DNA from: Azolla caroliniana
Taxonomy: Eukaryota > Plantae > Polypodiophyta
Reading direction: 5' to 3'
NCBI GenBank assembly: GCA_043228905.1
Contig: JBHGNT010000001.1
Span: 9,796,001 to 9,860,000, forward strand
Length of the DNA stretch: 64,000 bases
The number at the start of each line of letters is the position of its first letter. Position 1 is the first letter of the stretch. The notes beneath the pieces are model-generated. The model worked only from the letters and a program-made list of their open reading frames with translations, was not told the DNA's origin and did no database searches. Positions 13,601 through 39,615 of this stretch are shown piece after piece. The translations under genes and the position numbers were made by a program.

Positions 13601-15989
13601 GGTGAAGAAACAGAACCGGCCGAAGAAGATGAAAACGATACCGGAACCGGCCCTGATCCCGAAATGGATTCGGATGAAGAAGAATCGGAAGAACCGGTTA
13701 CCGAAGCTCCGGAACGGAGATATCCTCTAAGAGAGAGAAGGGCCCCCCAGAGATTTCCGGAACCAGAGCACGTGCTGCTAACCGACGAGGGGGAGCCGGA
13801 GAGCTTTGAAGAAGCAAAGCATGACACCCAGAGCCGCAGGTGGTTGAGTGCCATGCAGGACGAGATGGATTCCCTGCATGAGAACCACACATATGAACTT
13901 GTGGAGTTGCCGAAAGGAAAGCGGGCACTTCGAAACAAGTGGGTGTTCAAGCTGAAACCGGGAGATGCCGGAAACCCCCCGAGATACAAAGCCAGGATCG
14001 TGGTGAAGGGGTTTCAGCAAAAGAAGGGCGTCGACTTCGACGAGATATTTGCCCCGGTAGTGAAGATGACCTCCATCCGGACGGTGCTGAGCATAGCGGC
14101 AAGCATGGACCTCGAGGTAGAACAGATGGACGTGAAGACGACATTCCTTCACGGCGACCTCGATGAAGAGATCTACATGCAGCAACCGGAAGGATTCGAG
14201 AAGAAAGGGAAGGAGCACCTGGTATGCCGGTTGAAGAAGAGCCTTTACGGACTGAAGCAGGCTCCCCGGCAATGGTACCGGAAGTTTGACTCCTTCATGA
14301 CCGACGAAGGGTACCTCAAAACGCAGTCCGACCACTGCGTGTTTGTGAAGAAGTTCGAAGGAGGAGACCTTCTAATACTCCTCCTGTACGTGGACGACAT
14401 GTTGATCGTCGGACGGGACCAGGTCAAGATACGGATGCTGAAGAAGGCTCTTCACCGAACCTTCTCAATGAAGGACTTGGGTTCGGCGAGACAAATACTA
14501 GGGATGCACATTATCCGGGACCGGAGCAAGAAGCAGTTGTGGCTGTCACAAGAGAAGTACGTGACAAAGGTGCTTAAACGGTTCAACATGTCGGAAGCAA
14601 GACCGGTCGGATCGACCCTCCCGACAAACTGCAAGCTGTCCAGCAAGCAAAGTCCCAAGACAAAGGCTGAAAAGGAGGATATGATGAAAGTGCCGTATGC
14701 CTCAGCCGTCGGGAGCTTGATGTACGCCATGGTGTGTACGAGACCTGACATCGGATATGCAGTCGGAGTGGTGAGCCGGTACATGAGCAATCCCGGCAAA
14801 GAGCATTGGAACGCGGCCAAGTGGATACTCCGATACCTGAAGGGCACGGCAAACGTGTGCCTCCGATTCGGCTCCGGAAAGCCCGAACTCGACGGCTTTA
14901 CCGATTCGGATATGTCGGCTGATGCAGATACCAGCCGGTCCACATCAGGGTATGTGATGACGTATGCAGGGGGAGCTGTTTCATGGCAGTCGAGGCTGCA
15001 GAAGACGGTTGCGCTGTCAACCACGGAGGCGGAGTACATGGCGGCTGTTGAAGCCGGCAAGGAAATAATATGGATGAAGGACTTCATTAGAGAGCTCGGT
15101 ATCCGACAGGAGGAGTACCGACTCTACTGCGACAGTCAGAGTGCAATCCACCTTGCGAAGAACGCGGCCTATCACTCCCGGACGAAGCACATCCAGCGAA
15201 GATATCACTGGATCCGGGAAAGGATAGAAGACAAGGAGTTCGTGCTGACAAAGATCCACACGGACGAGAACGGGTCGGATATGCTGACCAAGGTCCTCAC
15301 ACCCGACAAGCTGGAAGCATGCCGGAAGAGGATCGGATTGGAGAGACATCCCATGCCGAAGTGAAGGGGGAGTTTGTTGTGATTACGGTCCCTTCGCATG
15401 GGATGGTCGGATATCGGAGATGAATGCCGACAAGCCCGGTTTCGGTTTCGGATCCGGATGACGAAGACCCCGGTTTCGGTACCGGATGACGAATGTACCC
15501 GGAGAGCGATCCGGATGCAGGGACATATCCGTGAATATGTTCGCTATGGGCCCCTGAGGCTACAGTTGTAAATAGCCCAAAGTCATATAAGTATAAATAT
15601 GACTTAGGGCAAACAGTTTTGTTGTTGCTTCTCATTTTTCTGTTTTTCCACTCAAGAGGAGTGAAGTGTAAGCAGCCGTGAGAGAGAGAGAGAGAGAGAT
15701 AGAGCGCGAGAGAGGAAGAGGTAGATGCCTCTGTGTATTTCCGCCGCCTGTGGCGAGGACAGCGAGCTCAAGGTCGTCGCCTTGCAGCTCGCCATTGTAT
15801 ACTTCTCTGTATAGTGTTGGGTTGGAGTCTTGTACTCCCGTGGTTTTTCCCGTCTGGGTTTTCCACGTTAATCCCTGTGTACTCGCGTTTTTGTTTTTTT
15901 CGTGTGGTTCCTATTTTCTGCTGCATTGATCCGCGATTACTCGGTTGTGGCCGAGAGAAGAAGGTGAATCGAAGCGTTGATTCTCAACA
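10647..15989 (+). mobile_element. Intact Ty1/copia LTR retrotransposon (Tnt1/Tork-like)
   Basis: 615-bp LTRs at 10647-11261 and 15375-15989 (one difference seen). PBS TGGTATCAGAGC at 11265-11276 (tRNA-iMet). PPT GAAGGGGGAG. TSD GTACA/GTACC. Confidence 0.97.
11291..15364 (+). CDS. gag-pol: Copia Gag-Pol polyprotein (Gag-PR-INT-RT-RNaseH)
   Basis: Uninterrupted ORF: CFHCGKPGHFRKNC, WVVDSGAS, integrase HHCC/DDE (LVHTD, ADNGGEY, NGLAER), YKARIVVKG, LLYVDDML, RTKHI, in copia domain order. Confidence 0.97.
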   Translation: MEGGGSGQPGMMVLNAQNYADWKIKMEDLLIVRDLYEPIDRSEIPKGVLESEWKLLNRKAVATIRQYVDVSVLQHVANDTNAYEMWKKLSGLYERKNALNRTSLMRKIVNLKYRDGESMVEHVSTFMGFVNQLAAIKFPLEDAMQAIILMCTLPESWENLVVTLSTSCTEDNLSLQTVKTSILNEEARRRDKEPASDPKMLFTESDRGRQWNRSPQRREKSGTRSQSRGRPTCFHCGKPGHFRKNCRHYRKDNGTDNTDSKKSPERNGAYRGATDRNGSDRRGQDRKGTTALAASEEEIMLITEEGELNIAGDETTWVVDSGASFHLTPERRYFSSYTAGEHGCVRMGNEGTCRIAGIGDVWLTTPTGCKMLLKNVRHVPEVRLNLISAGRLDDEGYTGSIRNGVMKFSKGSLIMARARKVNTLYLMNARLCPEELNVAADTAGELWHKRLCHMSEKGMKRLAEDNLIPVKHVHLEKCTDCLAGKQNRTSFHSRPPTRRSAPLELVHTDVCQVETKSHGGAQYFVTFIDDHSRRLWTAPLKTKDQVLCVFKELHARVERESGKKLKAIRADNGGEYRGQFQEYCRSKGIRLKFTVPKTPELNGLAERMNRTIMERVRSMLAHAKLPKGFWAEAMSTATYVINRSPLVPLDGDTPQRVWTGREVSYRHLKVFGCLAYVHVAKDRRGKLDPKTRPCIFLGYGDDEFGYRVWDPVDKKIFRSRDIIFMEDKTLADWESEKKVKSSKSTGEDQLYEEQPRPARDRLALEDPAEDGEETEPAEEDENDTGTGPDPEMDSDEEESEEPVTEAPERRYPLRERRAPQRFPEPEHVLLTDEGEPESFEEAKHDTQSRRWLSAMQDEMDSLHENHTYELVELPKGKRALRNKWVFKLKPGDAGNPPRYKARIVVKGFQQKKGVDFDEIFAPVVKMTSIRTVLSIAASMDLEVEQMDVKTTFLHGDLDEEIYMQQPEGFEKKGKEHLVCRLKKSLYGLKQAPRQWYRKFDSFMTDEGYLKTQSDHCVFVKKFEGGDLLILLLYVDDMLIVGRDQVKIRMLKKALHRTFSMKDLGSARQILGMHIIRDRSKKQLWLSQEKYVTKVLKRFNMSEARPVGSTLPTNCKLSSKQSPKTKAEKEDMMKVPYASAVGSLMYAMVCTRPDIGYAVGVVSRYMSNPGKEHWNAAKWILRYLKGTANVCLRFGSGKPELDGFTDSDMSADADTSRSTSGYVMTYAGGAVSWQSRLQKTVALSTTEAEYMAAVEAGKEIIWMKDFIRELGIRQEEYRLYCDSQSAIHLAKNAAYHSRTKHIQRRYHWIRERIEDKEFVLTKIHTDENGSDMLTKVLTPDKLEACRKRIGLERHPMPK

Positions 15990-20396: not shown

Positions 20397-22978
20397 AGTC
20401 TCGAGCTCACACGGTCGAGCAGTGCGAATATAATATGCTGAACCGCACAACGGCGGCACCGGTCCGCTAGATCGAGCCACGAAATACATACTCTCGGCAG
20501 GACGAGCGATATATCTACCGAGACCAGGATAACGACCAACCCCGATCCCCGGATCGACGGCGCCGAGACGACGACTACCGACGTGATAACCGCCGTGATC
20601 ATTATCGCGATGACCGGCACGGCGATTATGCCCGATATGATGACGATCACGATGACCGGTTTGACTGACGGAACTCACGCATTGATCGGCGAAATGGCAA
20701 CCGCAACACACGCAACAATAGAAGACCTAATGACAACCGCTGACGGGACGCTCCTCAAAATGACCAGCGCAACTCCAACGCACCTCGGAACAACCCACCA
20801 CCAAACGAGACCAAGAATCAACTACAACAGCTTCCACACACAGACCAAGCGGACACCAGCAGCTCGGCCAACGTGACATGTTTTAAATGTAATCAACCAG
20901 GCCACTACGCCACGCAATGTCCGACAACCAACCATGGCAAGGCACCCGTAGTGAACAATATCATGGCCGATGTTCAAATGGTCACTACCCGGAGTAAAGC
21001 GCAGACTACTCAGTGGCAAATCCAGGATGAAGTACGTCAGGCAACAAAAGAATGGATCGTCACAGCCAACAAAAATAATGTCGTACGCATGCAAACTGAC
21101 ATGAGGGACGGGCCCAGTGATGTACCACAAACCTCGACACCATCCACGTCGTCGGAGGACGACCGGCTATGGGATGTTCTTACCAACTCCTGCATCTCGC
21201 TGCCCCTACATAAACTACTACCACTCATGCCGAGATTTCGGGACACCCTGGCGGCACTCCAGGCCAATACTAAGCCCGTGACGCCACCGGTACAGCTCGA
21301 CGAAGCAGGAACCGGTCCACCACTCATGGATTCTCAGAACCCAACCGTGCAAATCATCATTAAGGGACAAGACCGATGGACAAGGTCTTGTCCCACGGGC
21401 GTGCACGACTTACAAAATACTAACAATATTACAAAAATTGCCTTTTAGGCGTGATCCTCGTTTCATTCCTCTTTTAAGATGTCGAGGATGCTTTCGGGGT
21501 CCGGGGTGGTGGCAAGGTGGTCTGGTTGGACTGTCGGTGCGGGGGTTGAGTTTGGTCCGAGGGTGTCATATCTTCTCGGACGTCCGCCTCAGGTGCGGCC
21601 GATTCTTCTGGTGGGGGTGTGGGTTCGTGGGCGCTGACCTCTACTTCGACAGGATCTGGTACCGTGTGGGCGTCCATGGGATGTCTGTTGGCCGGGGCAA
21701 GTTCCTCCTGTGCCGTGTCCGTGATCTCCTTGCTGGAAGGTTCTTCCTTCTGCTCTGTGGCCCTTGGAGGGCTGGTGGGGATGGCTGCGAGTCATTCTCG
21801 TTCGAAGGCTTCTGCTTCCATGCGAAACAGCATCTGACCGTCATTGAAGTCCTCCATTATTTGCTCGATTGCCACGGTGTGAGATTTTGCCAAGGACTGG
21901 TAATCCTCGGTTAAATCTGCACGGAGGTTTTATATGCTGGCTTCGTCCATTTTGTAGAAGCCGCGCCCCTCCTTCCGTCGGTTCTCGGCGTCGACGCGTA
22001 AAATATGCAATTCGGCAGCTTGGGCTGCCCATTCGTCTCCTGCGCGACTTAATGTTTCCTCGACCTTTTTGGTAAGTTGTTGGCGTTGTTTCTCGATCAG
22101 TATTCTGATGCGTGTCTCATCCATGCCGGGCTGTGCTCGGATGGCTGCTAATTCCTGTTTTAAGCCGTCGACCTCGGCCTGAATCTTGTGTGTTCTTAGC
22201 TCATAGATGGCTTGAGTGTTTTTTGCATCCGCGGTTACGAGCTGGAGAGCCTGCTTGTAACGCTTGGTGAGTTCTTCGGTGGCCTGCTCCCGTTCTTTTT
22301 GACACGTTGTCGTGAAGAAAACCGTCCCTTAGCACAATCGGTGCATAACGCGCGTGTACCGGCTCTTCACGCGTGCACGGCCTTTAATGTATATAATAGA
22401 GAATTAGGTACAAAGGAATATCCTAGATAGTTAGATCCGGTAGGTAGGAAGTTAATGACGGAAACGACTCCCTTCTTGAAGCTATAAAAGAGAGGGAGAC
22501 GCGGGGAGATAGGGGCATTACATTATTGAGGAGGACGAAGTGTTGTCGGACCGAAACCGAACGCTTCTCCTCTGTTTGTTCTCCATCGTTCTTCTCTGCA
22601 GGTTTTCGGGAGGCTCGCGCTGCTTCGAGGAACGCCCGTGTGCTTCCGGCAGCACCTCCATCCTATCCCTTTTCGTGCGCAGACGAGAAGGCATCGACAT
22701 CTGTTCGCCGGCTTGTTCGGTCGTAACCGCTCGCATGCTCTATTGTTTATTTGTCATTCATTAATATACAAACATTCGTGTCTCTCTGTCTCTGTGTCCA
22801 TTCGTGTCTTCTGCGTTGATAGGGCCGTGTCCCTGTGTTTCTTTGCTCATACGTAACCGAGCGTCTCTCTCTTTCTCATTCCCCTTCTATCACCTGCTCT
22901 TTGGTTCGAGACCCCGGTGGTCCCGCCTCGTTTCTCCACGCACGCGCGTAGTAACGCGACATCTTTGGTGAAGCCGAC

Positions 22979-25346
22979 GTGAACAAGGTGGCAGAGGAGC
23001 AGAAGATGAGGGTGTCGGATCTTGCAGAGGCCATGGCTTCGGCCATGGACCGGATAGCGAGCGCGCGCGAGGGCACCGGCGCCCTTGACAGGGCTATTGA
23101 GGCGATCGTCGGTACGGTCGGCCGGTTCAGTGGAAAGGATGCCACGAGTTATTTGGCGTCCTACCAGGCGGAGATATTGATGAGGGATTTTCTAGAAGAG
23201 AGGCGTCTTGCCGGATTCCCTCGAGTGGCGATGCCGGGCATCCATGCGGAGGTGCTCGAGGTCCGGGCGGAGAGCCGGACTTGGGATGAGTTCGAAGGAC
23301 GGCTCCTGGAGAAATACGGGCTGGATGACGCGCTTCGACTTTCGAAGCGGGGCTTCATGGAGTGGGTGGAGTCCCCCAACAAAGGAAGAAATGCGTCGGT
23401 ACTCCTCCGGGAGTTTGAGGAACGCTCTGCGCGCCTTTTGGCGCTCGATCAGACAGTTCTGGACACAAGTCGTGTCCTACTATTTGTCAAATCGGTTGAC
23501 ACACAGGATCGGGAGCAAGTGGGCTCCTTACTGGAAACCGAAGACGGGCTCACGGCCGACTGGGCCGCGGTAAAAAGAGTCTGGGGCCGTTTTGACAAAC
23601 GGTGGGAGTGGGCTGATACAGGGGCGACCGGGGCGGATCCTGTCGTAGCAAGGTAGCTCGAACCGATACCACAGGCGCGAATGGAAGAGACCCAGGAGTG
23701 GCTCGAAACCGGTTCGGCTTCGACCGGCGTGGTCAAAGGCTCGTCCGGGGGAACAACTCTGGAGGAGTTGACGCGGGTGGTAAAGGATCTCCAGATCACC
23801 CAGGCTCGGAGGGAAGGCGGCGAACAGGCTCGTGACTGACGGCCTCCGGTAGGAAATGGGTGCATGTGGTGCGACGAGGTCGGCCACATCCGGAAAGACT
23901 GCGGGGACTTTATGGAGGCTTTGAGAAGCCGGGTAGTGTACCTGTCGGAAGGTCGGGTGCACGCCAACGATACCCGGAGGGCCCTGAACCGAAACGATGG
24001 AAAGGAGGAATGAAAAGGCTGATGGAAGAGGCGGCAGCCCGGCACGCAGAGACCGTCCACTACTCAGCATCAGCCGGTATTCGGGTCGGGGGCAGCGGGG
24101 CCCAGAAGGAGAGCAAAGCCGAGTTTTGGCTGACGGTGCTGGAAGGCCTCGCTGGTGCCCGACTGAAGAGGGACGAGGCGGACCGCGCGGAGAAGCGGGT
24201 CCAAGAGGTAACCGGGTGGAGTGACCCGGTGGAAGAAAAGACGGGTTTCGTCGAAGCAGCTTGCCAGAACTACGAGGCTATGGTTGAAGACAAACGGGTA
24301 GGTAAAACCGGAGGGGCCGGACCCTCAAAGAGATACGAAACCCGATTCGGGCCGAAACGGAACGAGGCCGGTGAGACCAGTGACCGGGATAACCACAAGA
24401 AGGGCGGATACCGGTTGGGCACGGAGATCGAAAGGACCACGGACCTACGAAAGGTCTTGGAAGAACGAATCCTCGACAGCAAGGTGGAACTGTCGTTGCG
24501 GGAGGTGCTCGGAATCGCCAAGAAGGAGTTCCACGACTCCATCGTAGACTTGGTGAAGAGGAAGAGGCTGTCGACGAAGACAGAACCGGGAAAAGGTTGG
24601 TGCAGGTGCGGACGACGCACATAGAGGCCATGGCGCTGGAAGACAAGTGGGCAGAGAGCCACTATTCGAGGCCACACTGGGCCCAAGCGACCATGGAAAC
24701 CCCGGTGAAGATCGGAGATGTTCAAGAACCAGTGGTGGCGCTGGTGGACCACGGTTCGGAAATAAACCTGATGTCCATGGACTTCTACAAGAATGGGAAA
24801 TGGCCGGTCAACACCAAGCACGGGTGGAAGATACGGGCAGCGACGCGCGCCACCGAGGAACTAAACGGGGCCTGCCCAAACGTGCGAGTCAAGATCGACG
24901 ACGTCGAGATAGACAAGCACTTCTTTGTGCAGGAGACGTCCTCGCACCTGGTCATACTGGGAGAACCGTACATTACGGCAACACGGATGGAGAGCAAGGT
25001 GCTGGACAATGGGTCGGTGTTGAGCGGCAAGCTCAACCGGAGCTGGATCGGCTGAATAAGCCGGAGCCGGTAAGTGAGACGGAGCGGGCGAAACGGATCG
25101 CTATGACGGTGAGCAACCGAACCGGCAAGCAGTGGAGGCCGGGTGCAATCCGTAACCGGCAGTCCAATCGGAAGCCTAGTACAGGATAGACTACTAGGTA
25201 GCTATAGTCTCGTAGTAAGTGTCAGATGCTCGTGTGAGCATTGAAGTACATGGTACTTCTGTCAGTCCCAAGAGGACTTGTATAAATAGTGCTACTTAGC
25301 ACAGTGTATATACAGAGTCTTGATATAATTTTGAAATAGTGTTCTG

Positions 25347-25398
<52 letters not shown>

Positions 25399-27053
25399 TG
25401 TTCTCTGTTTTACGCTTCCACAAACACTTACGTTTACAGTCGGCTTACGCGAGGGTCAAGAGTCAGGACGGGCGTCATTCGGTCTAGTTCCTGACGGTGC
25501 GACCGAACCACAAGCGAAACCACGAGTCCCTCGGTGGCGAGAACCGAGAGGATTTTTAGAGAGGGCTGTCAAGGCTTGGGGCCGCGATAGTCCGGACACT
25601 CCGGGAAAACCCCACAAATGTACGATAGAGGCGAAACCGAAGAAACCTTGTACCATAAGACGGAAGTTTTGTTTCTCCGACAACGGAGGGTGTACGATAG
25701 TTGGCGTCGTTGGCCGAGAAAAGACAAGGGCGGAAGAGCGACTTCGGGCGTGCGGAGTTCTCGGGCCCAGCGAGGAAATCAACGGAGCCGTGGAGGCGGT
25801 CTCCTTCGACGTTACCTTGGGAATACTGCGAGAGGTGGTCGGAGAGGGCCTTAAAGAGGACCGGACGATACCGGTTTGTTCAGAAGACATGTACGAAGTC
25901 ATCGCGGACTTCAGTCGAGGGCTCGAGTCGGATCGGACGGCCCGGGTTAACACGAAGTACAAGACTGTGGACCAGAAGGTAAGGCCAATCGCGGCACCCT
26001 TACCGGAGGGCAGCGAGTTGCGAATCAAGGGGGTCGTGTCGGACCCCAGTTTACGAGATCCGGCCTGCATAGGACACACCTTCACCGACAGAACGCTACA
26101 GGAGCTCAAAATCGGTGGAAGTGGGTTCCTACTACCGGCGGAAGAAAACCAGTTTCGGAGAATTCTTGGAAGGCACGGGAAAGCCTTCACATTCTCACCG
26201 GAAGAGATCGGGTGCGTAGACCCGACAGTCGTGAAGCCGATGGTGATATTCACGGTACCGCATGTGCCGTGGAATCTCAAACCAATTCCGGTACCGAGAG
26301 CTCACATCCCGAAGCTGATGGAGTTGTTGAGGCAGAAAGTCGATATAGGCATCCTCGAACCGTCGAGTGCCCCGTACTCGAACCGCTGGTTTACCGTACC
26401 AAAGAAGAATGGGACGTTGCGCTTCATTCAGGACCTGCAACCGGTCAACAGAGTGACCATTCGGAACGCAGGAATCGGACCAACGATAGACGAGTTCGCG
26501 GAGGCCTTCGCTGGAAGGTCGATCTACTCGGTCGGTGATCTGTACTCGGGGTACGATCAGTTCCAACTAGCCGTAGAGAGGAGAGACATTACGACGACGC
26601 GGACTCCTCTCGGCCTAGTACGGATGTGTACCCTGCCACAAGGAGGGACGAACTCGGTGGCCCACATGGTAAATGCGATGAACAAGGTGCTGAGGGATTG
26701 TATCCCGGACATCACCATGCCATTGTTGGACGACATCCCGATTAAGGGATGTCCGGTGGAGGAAAAGGACGAAATGATCGGACCGGACGGATGCCGGAAA
26801 TTCGTGGTGACACACATTGACGACTGCGAGAGGGTGCTGCAGAGGCTAGAGGACGCGAGGCTCACCTTCTCCGGGGAGAAATCGGCCTTCGGGCAATCTG
26901 AGATCATGGTTGTCGGACATCTATGCGGACCGTATGGCTGGAAACCGTCTTCAGCTAAGGTGGAAGCCATCTCCGCAATGAAGCCCGACTGTAACTCGAT
27001 CACGGAGGTACGGAGGTTCTTGGGAGCATGCGCATTCTACCACATATGGATCC
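22979..27053 (+). pseudogene. gag-pol: D1 gag-protease-RT; RNaseH and integrase missing
   Basis: Gag, CMWCDEVGHIRKDC knuckle, ALVDHGSEINLM protease, RT (YSNRWFTVPKK, DLYSGYDQ, LPQG, LLDD). Stops and frameshifts. Ends at YHIWI. Confidence 0.9.
25018..25438 (+). mobile_element. Solo LTR (421 bp) inserted in the D1 protease region
   Basis: TGTTGAG...TTTACA. TSD GTCGG at 25013-25017 and 25439-25443. TATAAATA and (CT)n. The site is empty in sibling D2. Confidence 0.9.
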
Positions 27054-27502
27054 TCAATTGGACCGTGAAGTCGAAACAAGGAGTGCGGACGGTAGGCCAT
27101 CGGTGGGTGCAATATGTAAGATGTAGAGTTATAGAGAAAAGGTTTAGGGTTTAGGAATTAGGGTTTGAGTCTTGGTTTTGGTTTTGGTTTAGGGTTAGGG
27201 TTTAGTGTTTGTTTCGGGCTTAGGGTTTAGAGGATAAAAGGGTTTAGTGCAAGAGGGGAAAGGTAACACCAAGAATAATTTGAGCACACCCAAATTATTT
27301 GACAAACTTGGTGTAAGTGAGGCATAATAAGAGATAGAGGAAGGGGAGAGAGAGAGAGACGAGGGATTAATCACTAACATTAAAACTAGAAACAAGTTAA
27401 AACATAACCATAAGCTAAATAGTCTAGATTAGAGAGAGAGAGAGAGATTAAGAAGGAGACTAATTTTCATTAAGAAAAAGGAAAAATTACAATACGATGG
27501 GT

Positions 27503-27563
27503 AATGGTCATGAGCAAACTAGTTTCGCCCCCTACGGGGCTCATCAGTGCTACCATGACCATT
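27503..27563 (-). ncRNA. Type I hammerhead ribozyme with minimal palindromic stem III
   Basis: Minus strand reads AAUGGUCAUG-GU-AGCA CUGAUGA GCCCC-GUAG-GGGGC GAAAC-UA-GUU UGCU-CAUGACCAUU. This gives a 14-bp stem I with a 2-nt bulge, the full conserved core, a 5-bp stem II and a GUU cleavage triplet. Confidence 0.9.
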
Positions 27564-28538
27564 CGGGGTGGATAGGTTATATAAGGAGTTTTCGGAGTGG
27601 CTTTAGAGAAATGACAATAGGGAGTGGGGTTGTGCTTATGGATGTGATTGAAAGGGGGGGAAAGATTTGGAGAAGAAGGAAGAGGATTTTATGGGCTTTA
27701 ATGTGATAAGGGGAAGGCTTTGGTATGAGGGTTATATTGTAATAGGAGGGATAAGAAGAAAAGGGAGAGTTTAGGATATAAAATGTAAAAAGTGAGGAAA
27801 TATAAGGGGCATTAAGAGAGAGGGGGAAACAAGGCTTACGTGAGATGATGAGAAGGGAAGGAGAGAGAGAGAGAGAGAGAGGGAATGAGTAGACATAAGG
27901 GGAGTGAGTAGATCTAGGAGGAGAGAGAGTGGGAAAACGTGAAAAAATTAAGAGAGAGCAAAAGGGGAGAGAGAGGAGAGAGATGTGTGTAAACTAGAAA
28001 AAGTAAGAGAGAGAAAGGAAAGAGGAGAGAGGTAAGGGAGAGAGACATGTGTGGGAAAAATAAAGGGGAAAGTTTAGAAAAAAGGAAGAGGAGGGGTAAG
28101 GTAAGCAAAAAAAGGTGAGAGATCAGTGAGGGTAGAAGACTAAAAAAGGAATATGAAAATGAAAGGGTATATTGTGATAAGAGAAACGTAGAGAGAGAGA
28201 GAGAGAGAAAAGAGGATAAAAAGTAAGAAAGCTAAAGGAAAAGAGAGAGAGGTAGGAGTTAGAGAAGAGAGAAAGGGTATATCGACCCGCACTCCTCACA
28301 AAGCCGTAAGGCAAATCCTAAATAAAAAGCTACTAAAAAGAAAGGTTAAGGGGAGGGGTAACGTTTAAAATATATAGAAATCGAGGAGAGGGGCAACGGG
28401 TGAATATAATCTAAAGATTAGGTTTAATAAAAGTGTAGGAGAGAGGTATAAATGAAACTAGGAGGAATTAGGGGTATGAGTGAAACTAGGAGGTAGGGGT
28501 ATGGAAAAAATAGTAAACGGGGAAGGGCAGGAAAAATG

Positions 28539-28890
28539 TCAAAGTAATAAAGGGAGGGGTATAATGAAATTGAGAAAAGTAGGTGGAGGGGTAGAATGAA
28601 TTTTAGGATAAAGGAAGGGGGAGGGGTATCCAATATTTTGAGGAGAGGGAGGGTAGGAATTAAAAATATCAAAGTAATAGAGGGAGGGGTATAATGAAAT
28701 TGAGAAAAGTAGATGGAGGGGTAGAATAAATTTTAGGAGAAAAGAAGGGGAGGGGTATCCAATATTTTGAGGAGAGGAAGGGTAGGAATTAAAAATGTCA
28801 AAATAATAGAGGGAGGGGTATAATGAAATTGAGAAAAGTAGAGGGAGGGGTATAATGAAATTGAGAAAAGTAGATGGAGGGGTAGAGTGT
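28539..28890 (+). repeat. About 2.7 copies of a ~130-bp purine-rich tandem repeat built on GAGGGGTA subunits
   Basis: Unit starts near 28539, 28669 and 28798. Confidence 0.8.
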
Positions 28891-29614
28891 GATTTCAAAT
28901 GAAAGGGGGAAGGGTAGAGTATACGAATAGAGGTGAGAGAGGGTAGAGTAAAATATAGGAAAAGAAAATGGGAAGGGTAGAGATAGAGAAAGAGTAACAA
29001 AAATTAAAAGAGAAAGAGAAAGAAGAGAGAAATGGGGGGTTTTGAGTGAAAACATGAAAAGGGAGAGGGGTAGAGTGACAATTAGTTAAACAGACGAGGG
29101 GCATTTTTACAATTTTGTAGAGATCAAGGAGAAGAGGGGGAGTGATAAGGATTGTGCATATAAGCCGGCTACAACATGTAGTCCCGAGCATTAGTTAAAG
29201 AGGGAGAGGTGGGCACACACGGCTACCATGTGTAGTCCCGTGCTATTAATACAAAGAAGAGATAAAAGGGGCGAGTAATGAGTGTCAGTGTTGCATGTTG
29301 GGATGGAAGAAGAAAACCGGTGTCGCCGTTGCAAATGCGAATCAACGTGTTATGAGGGAACTCGTCACGAAACGGATGCTCGATGGGTGTCGATGCACGA
29401 CCGTCGTGGGTGCCATTCTCCGTTGAAAGGGCCTCCATAGAAAGCATGATGTATTCTCAATTGGACCGTGAAGTCGAAACAAGGAGTGCGGACGGTAGGC
29501 CATCGGTGGGTGCAATATGTAAGATGTAGAGTTATAGAGAAAAGGTTTAGGGTTTAGGAATTAGGGTTTGAGTCTTGGTTTTGGTTTTGGTTTAGGGTTA
29601 GGGTTTAGTGTTTG

Positions 29615-29847
29615 TTTCTCCAACGAGAAACCAATTTTGGCGCATACCGGTGGATGCGCGATTAGGTGGGGGCGGATGTCGTGAAGAAAACCGTCCCCTG
29701 GCGCAATCGGTGAATAGCGCACGTGAAGGGCCGGTTCATGTGCGTTATTCACCGATTGCGCCAGGGGACGATTTTCTTCACGACATCCGCCCCCACCTAA
29801 CCGCGCATCCACCGGTATGCGCCAAAATTGGTTTCTCGTTGGAGAAA
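29615..29847. repeat. Near-perfect palindrome (113-bp arms, 7-nt loop) of D-family 3'UTR-PPT-LTR start
   Basis: 29615-29727 is the reverse complement of 29735-29847, with about 4 mismatches. Confidence 0.92.
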
Positions 29848-32800
29848 ACCGGTATGGGTCCCGTTTCTTTGTCCATCGGTTCACCCTCCGTTTTGGACTG
29901 TTCGTCTTCGTTGTCCAGGCCTCTTAGATCCGGTTCGTCATCGTGGTGTTTCTTGAACGCTTTGACCCGCTTCCCTGCTACCGGCATCGCCATCCTCGTA
30001 CCGTCGAGTTCCGCCAGGTGATACGTCCCGTTGTCGTTGGCGCTCGTTACCACGTAAGGCCCGAACCACCGCTTCGCGAACTTCCGTGTTGCTCGGTGCT
30101 GGTTGTCGAGGCTGCTGTCGTAAACTAGCACCCAGTCGCCTTCCTCGATTTTCTTTGGTCTGAGCCGGTGCGTTCGGTCAAACCGGGCTTTGTTCTTCAT
30201 CCTCGCCGTCCAAAGTCTCTCCGCCGCTCGTTCCACGTCCTCTGGCCTCCGCTCGAGTTGCCGTATACGCGCCGCTAGCAGTTCTTCCCGACTCATTTCA
30301 TCACTCCAGTCTACTGTCACCCAAGAGGAGATCGTCCGTTCCATCGGCATGATCGGCTTCTATCCGAACATGAGCTCTGACGGCATGAACCCGGTTACCG
30401 AGTTGTGCGTTGTCCGGTCCGCCCACAGGGCGTAAGGTAACAGCCGTGGCCAGTTCCCGACCTGGTCTCCGCATGCCCGGACTAGCGCTTTGACGATTGG
30501 CCCGTGGCCACGCTCTACCTTCCCGTTTGCCTCCAGATTGTACGCTATGGTGAGCGAGAGCTTGACCCCTAACCGGTTGAACAGCTCCTCGGCCTCTTCG
30601 GCGTCCAACTCCCCGCGGTCAGCCACGATCTTTCCGACACACCTGTACCGGCATATCACGTCCTCGATCAGGAACCGACACACGGCCGCGGTCGTTTTGT
30701 TCTGCAGGGCTCGGCCTTCCACCTGGTTCGTCAGGTCTTCCCGGGCCAGCACCAAATATCGCATCTGCCCTACGCCCATCGGCAACATCACCAAATCTAC
30801 CATCCATTTGAAGTGGATGGCCGGAGGGTAAGTAGGGTGAAGCTCGTCCCGATGTCGGACTATGGAGTGCATCTGACAACTCTCGCAAGTTGTCACGAAC
30901 TTATGCACGTCCCGGTACAGTCCCGGCCACCAGTACTTCCCCTTTAGCTTCTCGAACGTGGCCCACGTCCCACGGTGTCCAGCCCAGGGGCTGTCGTGGT
31001 AGGCCTTCAACAGTTCCTCCTTCATCGCCACTACTCGGAGCAGGATGCCGTTCCTCTTCTTCGGGTGCTTCCACAAGCATCCGTCCCGGAGAAAGAATCG
31101 GTACGCTTTCTTCCGGATCCGGTTGGCCTCGTCCCTTGTCCACGATGCATCCGGCATCATTGTCCTTAAGAATCCCCCAATCTGCAACCACTCCCCGTCG
31201 TACTTGCTCTCGTTAAAATTGTTGAGCGCCGGAGTGCTCCCCCCCTCGGTTGTTACGTAAGCCGCCTCGAAGAAGTCTACGCCGACTTCCTCGTCCTCCG
31301 AAACCATGTCGTCCTCGTCGTTGAATTTCGCCCTCGAAAGGATGTCGGCCATGGCATTGTCTTTCCCAGAAATGTGTCGTATTTCCGGATCCAGGGACTT
31401 GATGTACGCTATCCACCTGAGCATTGCCAGGTCTGGGGTTGCACATCCGGAAACCATGCCGAGGATCGGCAGGCAGTCCATCTCGATAATTACCTCTGTC
31501 CCGATCAGATAGTCTTTATCGGCCTTTACCGCCGAAACGATAACCCAGAGTTCGCGTTTAACCTGGGCGTATCCTCGCTGTCGCTCGCTTAGGACCTTCG
31601 CGCCGAACCGGATTGGGAACCGGATGCCATCCTCGTCTTCTTGGTTGACGGCCCATCCGATCCCGGTCGGACTTGTATCTACCGTCATGTAGATGGGGGT
31701 GCCTTTCTCGTAGACAGCCTTCCGGAGTGCCGGAGCCACAGCAAGAGCCTCCTTCATCTTTCGTACCGACTCCGTATGCTCGTCTCGCCACTCGAATTTT
31801 CGCCCCTTTTTTAGCAACCCGTATAGCGGCTCGGCAACGTGGGCGTAATGTGGGATCCATATGTGGTAGAACGCGCATGCTCCCAAGAACCTCCATACCT
31901 CCGTGACCGAGTACAGTCGGGCTTCATTGCGGAATGGCTTCCACCTTTGCTGGAGACGGTTTCCGGCCATACGGTCCGCATAGATGTCCGACGACCATGA
32001 TCTCAGATTGCCCGAAGGCCGATTTTTCCCCGGAGAAGGTGAGCCTCGCGTCCTCTAGCCTCTGCAGCACCCTCTCGCAGTCATCAACGTGTGTTGCCAC
32101 GAATTTCCGGCATTCGTCCGGTCCGATCGTTTCGTCCTTTTTCTCCACCGGACATCCCTTGATGGGGATGTCATCCAAGAATGGCATGGTGATGTCCGGG
32201 ATACAATCCCTCAGCACCTTGTTCATCGCGTTCACCATGTGGGCGACCGAGTTCGTCCCTCCTTGCGGCAGGGTGCACATCCGCACTAGGCCGAGAGGAG
32301 TCCGCATCGTCGTAATGTCTCTCCTCTCTACGGCTAGTTGGAACTGATCGTACCCCGAGTACAGATCACCGACCAAGTAGATCGACCTTCCGGCGAAGGC
32401 CTCCGCGAACTCGTCTATCGTTGGTCCGATTCTTGCGTTCCGAATGGTCACTCTGTTGACCGGCTGCAGGTCTTGAATGAAGCGCAACGTCCCGTTCTTC
32501 TTCGGTACAGTAAACCACCGGTTCGAGTACGGGGCACTCGACGGTTCGAGGATGCCCATATCAACTTTCTGCCTTAATAGCTCCATCAGCTCCGGGATGT
32601 GAGCTCTCGGTACTGAAATTGGTTTGAGATTCCATGGTACATGCAGTACCGTGAATATCACCATCGGCTTCACGACTGTCGGGTCTACGCACCCGATTTC
32701 TTCCGGCGAGAATGCGAAGGCTTTCCCGTGCCTTCCGAGCATTCTCCGAAACCAGTCTTCTTCCGCCGGCAGTAGGAACCCGGCCCCACCGATTTTGAGC

Positions 32801-35800
32801 TCCCGTAGCGTTCTGTCGGTGAAGGTGTGTCCTATGCATGCCGGATCACGTAAACTGGGGTCCGACGCGACCCCCTTGATTCGTAACTCGCTGCCCTCCG
32901 GTAGGAGTGCCGCGACTGGCCTTACCTTCCGGTCCACAGTTTTGTACTTCGTGTTAACCCGGGCCGTCCGATCCGACTCGAGCCCCCGACTGAAGTCCGC
33001 GATGACTTCATACATCTCTTCTGAACAAACTGGTATCGTCCGGTCCTCTTTAAGGCCCTCTCCGACCACCTCTCGTAGTATTCCCAAGGTATCGTCGAAG
33101 GAGACCGCCTCCACGGCTCCGTTGATTTCCTCGCTGGGCCCGAGAACTCCGCACGCCCGAAGTCGCTCTTCCGCCCTTGTCTTTTCTCAGCCTACGACGC
33201 CGACTATCGTACACCCTCCGTTGTCGGAGAAACAAAACTTCCTACTTATGGTACAAGGATTCTTTGGTTTCGCTTTTATCGTACATTTGTGGGGTTTTCC
33301 TGGAGTGTCCGGTCTGTCTCGGCCCCACGCCTTGGCAGCCCTCTCTAAAAATCCTCTCGGTTCTCGCCACCGAGGGACTCGCGGTTTCGCTCGTGGTTGG
33401 GTTGTACCGTCAGGAACTGGACTGAATGACGCCCGTCTTGGCTCTTCACCCTCGCGTAAGCCGACCCGTTGTCCAGCACCTTGGTCTCCATTCGCGCCGC
33501 CGTAATGTACGGTTCCCCTAGAATGACCGGGTGCGAGGACGTTTCCTGCACAAAGAAGTGTTGGTCTATTTCGACGTCGCCGATCTTGACTCGTACGTTT
33601 GGGCAAGCCCCGTGTAGTTCCTCGGTGGTGCGCGTCGCCGCCCGTATCTTCCACCCGTGCTTAGTGTTGATTGGCCATTTCCCCTTTTTGTAGAAGTCCA
33701 TAAACATAAGGTTTATTTCCGAACCGTGGTCCACCAGTGCCACCACCGGTTCCTGAACATCTCCGATTTTCACCGGGGTTTCCGTGGTTGCTCGGGCCCA
33801 GTATGGCCTCGAATAGTGGCTCTCCGCCCACTCGTCTTCCAACGCCATGTCCTCTATGTGCGCCGTCCGCACTTCCACCGGCCTTTCCGGTTCTACCTCC
33901 GTCGACAGCCTCTTCCTCTTCACCAAGTCCACGATGCAGTCGTGGAACTCCTTCTTGGCTATCCCGAGCACCTCTCGCAACGACAGTTCCACCTTGCTGT
34001 CGAGGATTCGTTCTTCCAGGACCTTTCGTATGTCCGTGGTCCTTTCGATCTCCGTGCCCAACCGGTATCCGCCCTTCTTGTGGTTATCCCGGGCACTGGA
34101 CTCACCGACCTCGTTCCGTTTCGGCCCGAATCGGGTTTCGTATCTCTGTGAGGGTCCGGTCCCTCCGTTTCTACCCACCCGTTTGTCTTCAACCAGAGCC
34201 TCGTAGTTCTGGCAAGCTGCTTCGACGAAACCCGTCTTTTCTTTGACCCGGTTACCTCCTGGACCCGCTTCTCCGCGTGGTCCGCCTCGTCCCTCTTCAG
34301 TCGGGCACCAGCGAGGCCTTCCAGCACCGTCGGCCAGAACTCGGCTTTGCTCTCCTTCCAGGCCCCGCTGCCCCCGACCCGAACACCGGCTGACGCTGAG
34401 TAGTGGACGGTCTCCGCGTGTCGGGCTGCCGCCTCTTCCATCAGCCTTTTCATTCCTCCTCTTCCGTCGTTTCGGTTCAGGGCCCTCCGGGTATCGTTGG
34501 CGTGCACGCGACCTTCCCACAGGTACACTACCTGGCTTCTCAAAGCCTCCATAAAGTCCCCGCAGTCTTTCTGGATGTGGCCGACCTCGTCGCACCACAT
34601 GCACCTACTTCCTGCCGGAGGCCATCGGTCACGAGCCTGATCGCCGCCTTCCCTCCGAGCCTGGGCGATCTGGAGATCCTTTACCGCTCGTGTCAACTCC
34701 TCTAGAGTTGTTCCCCCGAACGAGCCTCTGATCACGCCGGTCGAAGGCGAACCGGTTTCGAGCCACTCCCGGGTCTCTTCCCTTCGTGCCTGCGGTATCG
34801 GTTCGAGCTTCCTTGCTGCGACAGGTCCTGCCCCGGTCGCCTCTGTATCAGCCCACTCCCACCGTTTGTCAAAACGGCCGCAGACTCTCTTTACCGCGGC
34901 CCAGTCGGTCGTCAGCCCGTCTTCGGTTTCCAGTAAGGAGCCAACTTGCCCTCAATCCCGTGCGTCAACCGATTTGACAAACAGTAGGACACGACTTGTG
35001 TCCAGAACAGTCCGATCGAGCGCCGAAAGGCGCGCAAAGCGTTCCTCAAACTCCCGGAGGAGTACCGACGCATTTCTTCCTTTGTTGGGGGACTCCACCC
35101 ACTCCATGAAGCCCCGCTTCGAAAGTCGAAGCGCGTCATCCAGCCCGTATTTCTCCAGGAGCCGTCCTTCGAACTCTTCCCAGGTCCGGCTCTCCGCCTG
35201 GACCTCGAGTACATCCGCATGGATGCCTGGCATCGCCACTCGAGGGAATCCGGCAAGACGCCTCTCTTCCGGAATATCCCTCATCAACATCTCCGCCCGA
35301 TAGGACGCCAAATAACTCGTGGCATCCTTTCCACTGAACCGGCCGATCATACCGATGATCGCCTCAATAGCCCTGTCAAGGGCGCCGGTGCCCTCGCGCG
35401 CGCTCACTATCCGGTCCACGGCCGAAGCCATGGCCTCTGCAAGATCCGACCCCCTCATCTTCTGCTCCTCTACCGCCTGTTTCACGTCGGGTTCACCAAA
35501 TATGTCGCGTTATTACGCGCATGCGTGGAGAAACGAGGCGGGACCACCGGGGTCTTGAACCGAAGGCAGATGATAGAAGGGGAAAGAGAAGGAGAGAGAC
35601 GCCTGGGCACGTATGAGCAAAGAAACACAGGGGGCGTGGCCCGTCAACACAAAGACGCGAATGGACACAGAGACAGGGAGAGACAAGTGTTTGTATATTA
35701 ACGAATAACAAGTACACAGCAGAACACGCGAGCGGCTACGACCGAACAGGCCGGCGAACAGATGTTGATGCCTGTTCGTCTGCGCACGAAATGGGGATAG

Positions 35801-36151
35801 GATGGAGGTGCTGCCGGAAGCACACGGGCGTTCCTCGAAGCAGCGCGAGCCTCCCGAAACCTGGAGAGAAGAGCAACAGAGAACAGACAGAGGAGAAGCG
35901 TTCGGTTCCGGTTCGACAGCACTTCGTCCTCCTCAATGCGCGATCCCTTTCTCCCTGCGTCTCCCTCTCCTTTATAGCGTCAAGAAGGGAACCGTCTCCC
36001 TCATTTACTTCCTACCTACCGAATCTAACTGCCCCTGGATCTCTCTCTGTACCTAATTCTCTATTATATACATTAAGGGTGCGCACACGTGAAGGGCCGG
36101 TTCATGTGCGCTATTCACCGATTGCGCCAGGGGACGGTTTTCTTCACGACA
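29717..36151 (-). mobile_element. Ty3/gypsy element D2, inverted, inserted in the 3' LTR of D1; own 3' LTR reduced to about 70 bp
   Basis: 5' LTR 36151-35503. 18-nt PBS TGGTGAACCCGACGTGAA at 35498-35481. PPT next to 29785. Flanked by GCGC at 36152-36155. Confidence 0.92.
29850..35485 (-). pseudogene. gag-pol: D2 gag-PR / RT-RNaseH-INT
   Basis: ALVDHGSE, FLDD RT, VDTSPTGIG RNaseH, H-H-C-C (YHDSPWAGH...CESC), integrase core (MVD, ADRGE, NGKVER), WFGPY. Gypsy domain order, with several stops and frameshifts. Confidence 0.92.
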
Positions 36152-39038
36152 GCGCGTGAACCGGCTCTTCACGCGTACGCGCCCTTTAATGTATATAATA
36201 GAGAATTAGGTACAAAGGAATATCCTAGGTAGTTAGATCCGGTAGGTAGGAAGTTAATGAGGGAAATGGCTCCCTTCTTGAAGCTATAAAAGAGAGGGAG
36301 ACGCGGGGAGATAGGGGCATTGCATTATTGAAAAGGACGAAGTGTTGTCTGACCGAAACCGAACGCTTCTCCTCTATTCGTTCTCCATCGCTCTTCTCTG
36401 CAGGTTTTCGGAAGGCTCGCGCTGCTTCGAGGAACGCCCGTGTGCTTCCGGCAGCACTTCCATCCTATCCCTTTTCGTGCGCAAACGAGCAGGCATCGGC
36501 ATCTGTTCGCCGGCCTGTTCGGTCGTAACCGCTCGCATGCTCTATTGTTTATTTGTCATTCATTAATATACAAACATTCGTGTCTCTCTGTCTCTGTGTC
36601 CATTCGTGTCTTCTACGTTGACAAGGTCGTGTCCCTGTGTTTCTTTGCTCATACGTAACCGAGCGTCTCTCTCTTTCTCTTTCCCCTTCCATCACCTGCT
36701 CTTTGGTTCGAGACCCCGGTGGTCCCGCCTCGTTTCTCCACGCACGCGGGTAGTAACGCGACAACGTGGCCCAGATTTGTTCCCGTTCGACGATTCTCTC
36801 TTCTTGTAGGGCGAAGTAGGAATCCGATAATGTGTCTTTTTGCTCCGAAAGTAGCTTGCATTTGATGAAAAACTCGTCAGCCATTTCTTTAAGGGTCGTA
36901 CGCTGACTCTGCAGCTCGGCATTCTCCGCGATCATCCTCTCCTCCCGTTGGCGATTTCTTTCCTCCTGCCGTTGGTTCCAGTCTTTTGCATTGTCGAGCG
37001 CGGCCTGTAGGTCTAGAACCTCCTTCTCTTTCTTCACCACTGTGGCTGCGTATTCCTCCAGCCTGCTTTTGAGTTCGGCTTCCTTCCCCGCGGCTTGCGC
37101 TTGTACCCGGCCCAGTGCTTCGTTCTGCTCGTGTATCCTTTGGTCGGCCTGGGCTCTCATCTCGGCCATCTGCTTGGAAGCTTCTTCTTTTAGGCGAGCC
37201 ATCGCCTCTTGATGCTGTTGTTCGTGTCTCTCGGTTCGCCGTTGTTCTTCTTTAAGCTCCGCACGGTAATCCCGGAGTGGGGTTTCTGTCTGGGTTGCCA
37301 CCTCCTTGGGTGCACGAGGTGGTGGTATCTCAGTCTTCTCCATGGGCGTGGGCGCCTCGGTTGTTGTGCAGGCATCGACCATTTGTAACGAGTCTGTTTG
37401 TGTACTGGCCTGCACCGTCAGGATTGAGTCGGTGATGGTGCTTTCATCCATCATTGTTATGCGTGGAGGCATTGGGAGGGCCTCGGTGGTCGTTACCGGA
37501 AGGCTCAAGAGTTGTTGTTCCGGCTGGTTTTGCTCCCAGGCTGCCAGCTTCTGGTTCATAGTGTGCCATAGTTCTGTAGCCATCTTAGCCTGTTTTTGGG
37601 CTATTTTTATCTTTCAGGCCATGTCTTTGGCTGCCCGCGTAGTGCGATCCAGGTCCCGATATGCCTCGATAAGGGCCGTGTTCAACTCGGGGACCTCCAT
37701 GAGGAGAGCGGCCTGTTTTGCCTGCTTCTTCCTCCCGATTTTTTGTAAAGCCCTGTCCTCCTGGGGCTCAATTTCACCTATTAGCGCGCGTTGAATCATT
37801 TTTGTTTCGGCGTGCTCCTCCGCCATTCGGGCGGCTGTCGCGACTTGGGCTCTGGCGAGGAAGTCGACCAGCTCGAATGACGTACCGAGGCGTAGGAGCG
37901 CACTAAATTCGTAAGCCTCCGCAGGGAGGTCCTTATATCCGAGGACTTCATCCTCCGAGATCTGCGTTGTCTGCCCATGCTCGATCGTTCCCTGGTTCAG
38001 CAATGCCTCCTCAGGGGTGATGGCCAGGTTGCTCTGTCGGACAACTAAGGCTTGCTCCTGTTGTGGCTCTTTCTGTTCTTCTGAGGACTCGCTGTTGACT
38101 CGTCTTCTCTTGCTTGGCTGTGTTTGGGGTTCTGGGGCCGGTAGTGTCGTTTCCTCCGCCTGCTTCCTTTTCTGGGGTCGTGGTGGTGCAACCTGTTATG
38201 TGTTGGGGCGTGGGCTAGGTTCTGGGGATGTTACCGAGGCGCGCGACGTTGGCTGTCGAATGGTGACGTCATCGGTCGTGTTGTCTTCCGCGGCTACCTC
38301 CTCCTCCCATTCTTGGTAGGTCTCGGAAACTACCCTTTTTTGTTGGGGTTGGGCGGGTGGTGGTGCAGATGCGGTTTTTTGGTCGGTCGCAGGAGGTGAA
38401 GGCGATGTGGGCTCCTCCCATGCTTCGTGGCTGATGGCAACGAATTTCTCCCTCTGCCTTCGTGGTGGTGGTGGGGACGTGTGACTCCGCGTCTGGTCCG
38501 TCGGTGTATCGTGGGTATGGGTACGGCATGATGTCGTACTGTGGGTCTTCTGGTAGCACCGGAAAAGGGTTTAGTTCCGGTTGGTTGACCTCCGGAGGGC
38601 TCGACATGGTGGAGATGGAGACGGGGTTCGACTGTGTGGAAGCGTGAAGAAGAGTGATGAGGCGAGGGCGAGACACAGGAGGAACAGCAGGAAGGGGAAG
38701 TCTAGCAGAGGGGTTATGAGAGTGAAAGAGGGCTTGAGAGCAAGAATGTTTAGCGTGATGAGGGCGAGACGGGGTTTCTGAGGTTGAGAGCGATGGAGAT
38801 GGGGAGCGATAATGATCTGTGCTGCGTTTTGGAAACGGTTTTAGTAACTTACTCCTAGGGTTTTGTGCCTGAAGCGAATCCTGAAGATTCTGAGTCGTGG
38901 GTGCCATAATAAGTGACTAGCACCACGTGTCCTGAAGGTGAGTGGTGTGCTTCTAGTGCCATGCATGTGCTTAAATAGGTACTAACTGAGCGGTGGCGAG
39001 GGGTGCTCCTAAAATTGTGGGTGCCTAGGTGGGTGGTG

Positions 39039-39615
39039 TAGGCACCTCGCAATGAAAAAGTTCAAGGACCTTCGTGCGCACGATTTGGAAAGTGGTGGCC
39101 TCTCCTATTTCGAGGCGAGAGTACCATCGTGCGGCCGGTCCATCGAGGGAGAGTGTGAACTCGGCAATCTCCGAGGCATTGATTTCGGCCGGCGTGAGGC
39201 GGTGCGTGGAGTGGTTAGCCTGCCACGTGGATATGAAGGCACGGACATGTGACTCTGCGTCTGGTTCGTCGGTGTATCGTGGGTATGGGTACGGCATGAT
39301 GTCGTACTGTGGGTCTTCTGGTAGCACCGGAAAAGGGTTTAGTTCCGGTTGGTTGACCTCCGGAGGGCTCGACGGGGGTTCTGGTGGTGAATCAACTCAT
39401 GATCGAGTGTCCGGTGGCGACGATTGCACTGGACAAGCCTCCGATTGATCGGGAAAGGATTGGTCAGTGACCGCCGAGTCGGAAGTTCCTTCGACTGGCT
39501 CAGGGCGTCGGGCGGGTGGCCGAGACCTCGTGGTGCGAGAGGGCGCCGTAACGGCGGCTGGTGGTTACCTTCAACGAAGTTCACTGTGCACTCACAGCTG
39601 TAACCAGGCGTGCCA
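39039..39615 (-). pseudogene. gag: PBS plus 5' part of a second Tat-like gag copy (E2)
   Basis: Reverse complement closely matches 10340-10645 joined to 15990-16243 without the Copia insert. PBS TGGCACGCCTGG. Confidence 0.88.

Follow-up and report, generated by a model that had tools for sequence, protein, structure and literature searches.

Organization of the Locus

The stretch of DNA studied here, hereafter called the window, covers 64,000 nucleotides of the Azolla caroliniana genome (contig JBHGNT010000001.1 of assembly GCA_043228905.1, positions 9,796,001 to 9,860,000 of the forward strand). Our subject is a non-coding sequence of 2566 nt, hereafter the insert, which lies at positions 27053-29618 of the window inside a broken Ty3/gypsy retrotransposon and carries a hammerhead ribozyme motif on its minus strand. 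Its surroundings, from about 10.3 to 39.6 kb (10331-39624), form a G+C-rich block (52-59% G+C vs 34-38% outside), which corresponds to one large inverted duplication of a Ty3/gypsy element with colinear arms that are 91-96% identical. According to Pfam, the domains of the gypsy element are RVT_1, RNase H, Integrase_H2C2 and, in a gag-like region, DUF4100; its two inverted copies, D1 and D2, are found around the insert, as follows:

22308-27052, plus strand: D1, a Ty3/gypsy copy with the DUF4100 gag-like region and the reverse transcriptase (RT), broken at 27052/27053
27053-29618, minus strand (sense of the element): the whole insert, 1.07 units long, non-coding and hammerhead-bearing, delimited by its period, the identity of its ends, its lack of coding capacity and its junctions
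29619-29727, plus strand: remnant of D1 past the deletion, forming the left arm of the central palindrome
29735-36151, minus strand: D2, the inverted sibling copy, in which the 2005 bp lost from D1 are still present (29848-31852, RNase H and integrase)

D1 and D2 meet tail to tail at 29731, in a central palindrome whose arms of 113 nt are 96% complementary and separated by a spacer of 7 nt (29728-29734). An initial annotation of this DNA had estimated that about 2 kb of D1, covering RNase H and integrase, had been replaced by the insert. The comparison with D2 makes this figure exact: the colinear alignment of D1 with D2 (minus strand) stops at 27053, which corresponds to 31853 in D2, and resumes at 29615, which corresponds to 29847, so that exactly 2005 bp of the RNase H-integrase part are missing, with the 2566 bp of the insert in their place. 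The D2 open reading frame (ORF) over the lost stretch does encode RNase H and Integrase_H2C2 domains. Homology of 1-4 nt had also been proposed for the junctions, and this is what we read: a single nucleotide is shared on the left (C at 27053), within a looser match between CATATGGATCC in D1 and CATGATGTATTC in the unit, and four nucleotides are shared on the right (TTTC, 29615-29618).

Both gypsy copies end at the same internal point of the integrase region, a hint that the duplication arose by fold-back. Over 612 nt (22350-22961), D1 matches D2 directly at 36152-36763 (95%), and this stretch is also part of the inverted alignment (22308-25017 vs 36151-33461); this double match implies either an internal inverted structure in the 5' part of the gypsy element or a long terminal repeat (LTR) present in both orientations. 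The left arm of the large palindrome has been enlarged by a copia insertion, by the amplification of a 752-bp unit (both described below) and by the hammerhead-bearing insert.

Anatomy of the Insert

As initially annotated, the insert is made of one 2403-nt period plus an identical overlap of 163 nt: positions 27053-27215 and 29456-29618 are identical over 163/163 nt by BLAST. The spacing of 2403 nt extends to 27046-27215 vs 29449-29618, the 7 nt to the left of the overlap giving an imperfect match (5/7). The parts of the insert are the following, in the order of the window:

27053-27215, minus strand: terminal redundancy, 3'-side copy in the sense of the element, with 88 nt of complex sequence and 75 nt of telomere-like tract, identical to 29456-29618
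27141-27250, minus strand: degenerate telomere-like tract of about 110 nt, TTTAGGG-type on the plus strand and CCCTAAA-type on the hammerhead strand (TRF period 7)
27517-27564, minus strand: type I hammerhead, one per period, with a predicted cut after U27517 (27517/27516); the 3' strand of helix I continues to about 27503
27577-27584, minus strand: TATA box (TTATATAA), read from the sequence, 13 nt upstream of hammerhead helix I
27600-29100, minus strand: low-complexity body whose plus strand is 75-86% purine; it contains (GA)n runs, 2.5 copies of a 129-bp unit (93% matches) and 10 copies of 32-bp sub-repeats
29100-29455, minus strand: complex, more G+C-rich 5' part of the unit, holding a 74-aa sense ORF with a 91%-identical relative (P0001, see below)
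29456-29618, minus strand: terminal redundancy, 5'-side copy in the sense of the element, which we read as the remnant of a 5'-truncated upstream unit, similar to a pseudo-LTR

The absence of coding capacity, already pointed out in the initial annotation, is borne out. Twenty ORFs of at least 40 aa overlap this stretch; none of those inside the insert exceeds 153 aa, most of them are of low complexity, and the ten insert ORFs that were tested gave no Pfam match at E ≤ 1. None of the insert ORFs encodes a telomerase-like RT, with or without GIY-YIG, which is the hallmark of autonomous Penelope-like elements; the insert can, thus, be at most a non-autonomous derivative. When the sequence is read directly, the 163-nt repeats are devoid of LTR-type TG..CA ends, no TGG resembling a primer-binding site (PBS) adjoins either of them, no polypurine tract (PPT) is seen and no target-site duplication (TSD) flanks the insert, all of which had been stated before; we did not find any poly(A) or other RNA-end mark at the insert either. 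An LTR element (LARD, TRIM or retrozyme) was rejected on the lack of TG..CA, PBS, PPT and TSD. A Helitron was rejected as well: a 5' TC is present, but neither strand shows a CTRR 3' end or a hairpin.

The two strands of the unit are extremely biased in composition. The plus strand contains 33% G and 7.6% C, with 80 runs of three or more G vs 5 on the minus strand. It corresponds to the telomeric G strand, a polarity that DNA made by extending a G overhang should have. Despite these 80 G-runs, no G-quadruplex motif with loops of up to 12 nt occurs in the insert. The predicted sense RNA is 72% pyrimidine and 7.6% G, with only 28% of its bases paired; a structured RNA in the complex 5' part (29100-29460) was considered and rejected (fold z = +0.27). 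In the sense direction, we read the unit as a complex 5' part (from 29543), a pyrimidine-rich body, the TATA box, the type I hammerhead, a tail of about 265 nt and the CCCTAAA tract, an order that head-to-tail addition of units onto telomeric repeats would yield. The TATA box, the strand bias of the body and the telomere-like CCCTAAA tract on the hammerhead strand were all absent from the initial annotation.

The insert is clearly younger than the inverted gypsy duplication that harbours it. No difference is found in the 163 nt of the overlap, whereas the palindrome arms differ by 3.5-9%; the probability of such a result for an insert as old as the arms is P ≤ 0.003, and the upper bound on the divergence of the insert itself is about 1.8%. 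Of the recent insertion deduced initially from the identical repeats, it is this relative age that is upheld.

Hammerhead Motif and TATA Box

The hammerhead was assessed with a structural descriptor requiring the core CUGANGA/GAAA, helices I-III and H17. The full descriptor matches once in the window, on the minus strand of the insert, and in none of 300 shuffles of the window; one hammerhead per period, with a predicted cut at 27517/27516, is what had first been annotated. The core pattern taken alone is not enriched in the window (4 found vs 7 expected). Helix I comprises 4 bp (AGCA/UGCU), a GU bulge and then 10 bp (AAUGGUCAUG/CAUGACCAUU); the CUGAUGA core is intact; helix II (GCCCC/GGGGC) has 5 bp closed by the loop GUAG and is followed by GAAA; helix III is reduced to 2 bp (A-U and C-G) around a UA loop, within the perfect 10-nt palindrome AAACUAGUUU. 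The core is complete according to the criteria of Rfam clan CL00010, with C3 U4 G5 A6 N7 G8 A9, G12 A13 A14, the pair A15.1-U16.1 and H17, and the local fold at the hammerhead has a z-score of -4.6.

A permissive Rfam scan of the 3.7 kb from 26500 to 30200 returned Hammerhead_3 as the best match of the region (23.5 bits, E 0.094); at the gathering threshold, Rfam gave no match anywhere in the window. The low score comes from the minimal helix III and the bulged helix I, which are penalised by the models. One has to keep in mind that the detection of Penelope-type hammerheads has needed relaxed descriptors (PMC4209133), and that a short palindromic helix III is a trait of the “canonical” type I hammerheads, which are said to cut as dimers (PMC4209133, PMC7229834). 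With its 2-bp helix III lying within a palindrome, the motif of the insert is predicted to cut only when two copies pair, i.e., in multimeric transcripts; judging from its sequence, it may be an active ribozyme in that form. An RNAcofold run on two copies of the hammerhead was discarded, as it returned a trivial full duplex that is uninformative on the double-hammerhead form.

Telomere-like Tract

The telomere-like tract lies about 265 nt downstream of the hammerhead cut on the same strand, and a partial second copy is found at 29544-29618. With at most one mismatch, TTTAGGGTTTAGGG occurs in the window only in the two copies of the tract (expected number 0.00). No telomeric array was found in the 64-kb window; the locus, between two parts of a gypsy copy, is internal and fits attachment to a break there instead of to a telomeric overhang. 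In the rotifer Athena elements and Terminons, the reverse-complement telomeric repeats directly adjoin the hammerhead, “immediately downstream” of it (PMC6431247).

Relatives in Public Assemblies

Relatives of the insert were sought by protein-level searches with its ORFs against the public ENA assemblies. The first one, P0001 (59 aa, one ENA contig of 2582 bp), shares 49/54 identities with the sense ORF at 29420-29259, after which the match diverges in a manner that we read as a 1-nt indel. The second one, P0002 (66 aa), is present on four ENA contigs of up to 1486 bp; it shares 21/23 identities with 27504-27572, i.e., the hammerhead read on the opposite strand, and, after a frame change, 34/42 identities with 27578-27703, which amounts to 19% amino-acid divergence. 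P0002 retains the codons of the TATA box, Y-I-R (TAT ATA AGR). Both of its changes inside the hammerhead fall in helix I; one is U1.4 to C, and the partner base, 2.4, is hidden at a synonymous codon position. The window's own ORFs are absent from the ENA protein collection, so P0001 and P0002 come from other copies or other samples. The family of the insert has, then, two diverged copies in the ENA assemblies, one of them with the hammerhead and the TATA box.

Other searches brought no further member. A word-index protein search with the ORF spanning the hammerhead and the ORF crossing 29456/29455 gave no candidate, a blank that reflects the word index, since the profile-free search found P0002; a family-specific 31-mer gave 0 matches in genome and viral contig collections, as expected from the absence of plant genomes there. 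A pattern made of the hammerhead core and helix II (GCCCC/GGGGC) retrieved six JGI metagenome contigs (L001-L006), which were set aside as unrelated, only a 27-nt motif being common to them and the insert. They fall into two groups with long helix III stems and are probably of bacterial or phage type. P0003, from another organism, was also rejected as a member of the family because it shares only the hammerhead motif with the insert. It is an 819-aa “protein” with at least 10 tandem repeats of about 57 aa on a 26.9-kb ENA contig, and corresponds to a satellite of about 170 nt, hammerhead-bearing and of retrozyme type, read as protein.

Identity of the Insert

We consider it probable that the insert is a protein-less, non-autonomous derivative of the endonuclease (EN)-deficient Penelope-like elements (Athena/Coprina type), copied into a double-strand break by nuclease-independent, microhomology-primed synthesis. 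The signature of these elements combines a type I hammerhead with telomeric repeats in reverse complement on that strand, a partial-tandem structure and the lack of a TSD. The first two are, in combination, characteristic of the EN-deficient Penelope-like group (PMC8557442, PMC6431247, PMC12477314), canonical type I motifs have been reported in the Penelope-like elements of Selaginella (PMC4209133), and Penelope-like insertions typically take the shape of partial tandems with pseudo-LTRs (PMC8557442). The insert is a partial tandem as well, but its upstream copy is truncated before the hammerhead, leaving a single hammerhead outside the 163-nt repeats. The CCCTAAA tract on the hammerhead strand points to the EN-deficient rather than to the GIY-YIG branch. 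As to the mode of insertion, the lack of a TSD, the 2005-bp target deletion and the microhomologies of 1 nt and 4 nt match, by analogy, what nuclease-independent insertion leaves at a break. These three features also mark nuclease-independent retrotransposition into breaks, as for LINE-1.

Between the two names put forward in the initial annotation, a large retrozyme or a non-autonomous Penelope-like element, our results side with the second: a non-autonomous, hammerhead-bearing element of Penelope-like type, present at more than one unit length and inserted without a TSD where 2 kb of the target were lost. The suggestion of a possibly undescribed family went too far, the design being that of the EN-deficient Penelope-like elements known from Selaginella, essentially the only plant source in which they are documented (PMC4209133, PMC12477314). 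The insert, thus, adds to a known kind of element that is hardly described in plants, and is no new kind of system.

Several points weigh against this reading. The hammerhead falls below the Rfam gathering score (23.5 vs 48.5 bits), and the type I model scored still lower; its conservation in P0002 relative to the flank (21/23 vs 34/42 codons) is not statistically significant and only suggestive. The telomere-like tract is degenerate and remote from the hammerhead (about 265 nt), and the locus is internal rather than telomeric. The 3' end of the insert lies 88 nt past the tract, so that the ends of the insert differ from those deduced for the unit; moreover, these ends are known from one copy only. 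No RT-encoding partner sharing the hammerhead or the tail was seen in the window, the genome beyond it not having been searched. Lastly, a DNA template would give an identical product.

Alternative Explanations

This last point leads to the strongest of the rival explanations, which we nevertheless hold to be unlikely: a DNA-templated filler, in which microhomology-mediated synthesis, of the synthesis-dependent strand annealing (SDSA) or polymerase-theta type, would have copied 2566 bp from a genomic head-to-tail array, for example a subtelomeric one, with neither RNA nor RT involved. Microhomology at both junctions and a 2-kb target deletion are classical features of filler-DNA repair; the insert ends at arbitrary positions of the unit, inside the telomere-like tract and 88 nt past it, and the lack of a poly(A) or other RNA-end mark also speaks for a DNA template. 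The filler would, however, require two adjacent array units without any difference to produce an overlap that is 100% identical over 163 nt, whereas the known copies differ by several percent, and a templated filler usually measures tens to hundreds of bp in plants.

A giant retrozyme seems to us distinctly less credible. A tRNA ligase would close the 2403-nt monomers cut by the hammerhead into RNA circles, whose rolling-circle reverse transcription would generate the 1.07-mer. Such a process would explain a product longer than one unit with a perfectly identical overlap; the single type I hammerhead per unit is of the dimer-dependent kind found in animal non-LTR retrozymes (PMC7229834), and animal retrozymes are themselves now seen as Penelope-like derivatives (bioRxiv 10.64898/2026.07.22.740005). 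The size of the unit argues in the opposite direction, with 2403 nt vs circles of 170-400 nt in animals and 600-1000 nt in plants (PMC7229834, PMC5680766), i.e., 3-10 times any retrozyme circle described. So does the predicted RNA, 28% paired and poor in G (7.6%) whereas retrozyme circles are highly self-paired (PMC7229834), and the overlap is accounted for by pseudo-LTR formation, for which no circle is needed (PMC8557442). The propagation through circular RNA that the initial annotation had favoured is, thus, unsupported by the size of the unit, by its 72% pyrimidine and weakly paired RNA or by its partial tandem. Bolder still, and in our opinion a long shot, would be the proposal that ferns harbour a 2.4-kb “giant retrozyme”, a pyrimidine-rich RNA processed by its hammerhead, circularised by tRNA ligase and copied in rolling-circle fashion by an endonuclease-less Penelope-type RT, whose G-rich, telomere-like cDNA would recurrently patch breaks; if true, this would be a plant system joining ribozyme circles, telomerase-like RTs and double-strand-break repair.

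It is very improbable that no mobile element is involved, the hammerhead and the telomere-like tract having met by chance in an ordinary low-complexity satellite or the junctions being an assembly chimera: a hammerhead under the Rfam gathering score, a core pattern that is not enriched on its own (4 found, 7 expected) and a repeat-rich palindrome that is hard to assemble would fit this idea, but the full descriptor matches once vs 0/300 shuffles, the hammerhead and the TATA box are kept in an independent diverged copy on 4 contigs, the palindrome arms differ by 4-9% and are, hence, not an assembly fold-back, and both junctions bear the microhomology of real repair events.

Proposed Insertion Mechanism

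Coming back to the insert as an EN-deficient Penelope-like derivative, we propose that a double-strand break occurred in one arm of the gypsy palindrome, in D1, and that 2 kb were lost there. Large palindromes are fragile, and asymmetric deletion near their centre stabilises them; it may be, as a speculation, that the palindrome itself caused the break. Through imperfect microhomology, the D1 plus strand, with its 3' end (...CATATGGATCC) set free, would then have paired with an RNA of the element and served as primer for a Penelope-type RT provided in trans. This polarity of priming fits the insert, whose plus strand would correspond to the cDNA sense. Synthesis would have covered 2566 nt, and hence more than one unit, if the template was a read-through transcript of head-to-tail units; alternatively, the RT may have jumped to a second RNA, as in the formation of Penelope-like pseudo-LTRs. 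Finally, the cDNA would have been sealed by its G-rich end to the opposite side of the break, with 4 nt (TTTC) in common. What can be read is the anatomy of the insert, its junctions, its hammerhead motif and the existence of other copies; the RNA intermediate, the source of the RT, the cause of the break and the activity of the ribozyme are what we infer.

Other Features of the Window

The window contains several other repeats. Between 15883 and 20470, six head-to-tail copies of a 752-bp unit with 100% identity encode a piece of retrotransposon gag (weak Retrotrans_gag and zinc-knuckle matches); the right palindrome arm shows part of this unit only once (39036-39292, 95%), which indicates that the unit was amplified in the left arm alone, and very recently. 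An intact Ty1/copia element is present at 10647-15674, with a single ORF of 1371 aa for gag, integrase and RVT_2 domains and a protease-like barrel. Over at least 300 nt, its terminal repeats show 100% identity, which makes its arrival in the left palindrome arm very recent. The copia relatives that we found were of Streptophyta type only. Another pair of direct repeats, at 6373-6672 and 9245-9544 (2872 nt apart, with 100% identity over at least 300 nt), may belong to a small LTR element or to another partial tandem. Finally, two tandem copies of a unit of 175-176 nt with 99% identity are found at 63391-63741.

Significance and Comparison with Known Systems

The endonuclease-less, telomere-associated Penelope-like elements are the closest retroelement relatives of telomerase, and in plants they are known essentially only from Selaginella (PMC12477314). 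A gene-less, hammerhead-bearing derivative filling an internal break in a fern would be a clean natural example of the use of a free DNA end, with all junctions readable: a 2005-bp deletion, microhomologies of 1 nt and 4 nt, and a 1.07-mer product. It would also imply that the non-autonomous Penelope-like derivatives, a group that includes the animal retrozymes, can reach several kilobases.

With endonuclease-independent retrotransposition, as described for LINE-1, the insert shares the lack of a TSD, a large target deletion, junction microhomology and what would be priming from a free 3' end; unlike in the LINE-1 case, the template would be a hammerhead-bearing Penelope-like RNA and the product is a partial tandem. 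Like the plant LTR retrozymes, it is non-autonomous, hammerhead-bearing and hosted by a plant genome, but the type III hammerheads in both LTRs, the tRNA-Met PBS, the PPT, the 4-bp TSD and the circles of 600-1000 nt that characterise these elements (PMC4918200, PMC11722881) are all absent from it.

The metazoan non-LTR retrozymes offer another comparison. The insert resembles them in being non-coding and longer than one unit, with a single type I hammerhead per unit whose helix III is short and palindromic (PMC7229834), and presumably in relying on a Penelope-type RT (PMC7229834; bioRxiv 10.64898/2026.07.22.740005). It differs from them by its unit of 2403 nt instead of 170-400 nt, by an RNA predicted to be 28% paired instead of a compact self-paired circle, by its telomere-like tract and by its plant host.

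The EN-deficient Penelope-like elements themselves (Athena, Coprina and those of Selaginella, as well as the Terminons) provide the closest match. Unlike them, the insert has no RT or other recognisable ORF, its body is of low complexity and rich in pyrimidines, its tract is degenerate and about 265 nt away from the hammerhead, and its locus is internal to a gypsy copy instead of being a chromosome end. Like them, it carries a type I hammerhead near its 3' end and, downstream of it on that strand, telomere-like repeats in reverse complement, and it is a head-to-tail, partial-tandem copy without a TSD that appears to have joined free DNA ends instead of nuclease nicks (PMC8557442, PMC6431247, PMC4209133).

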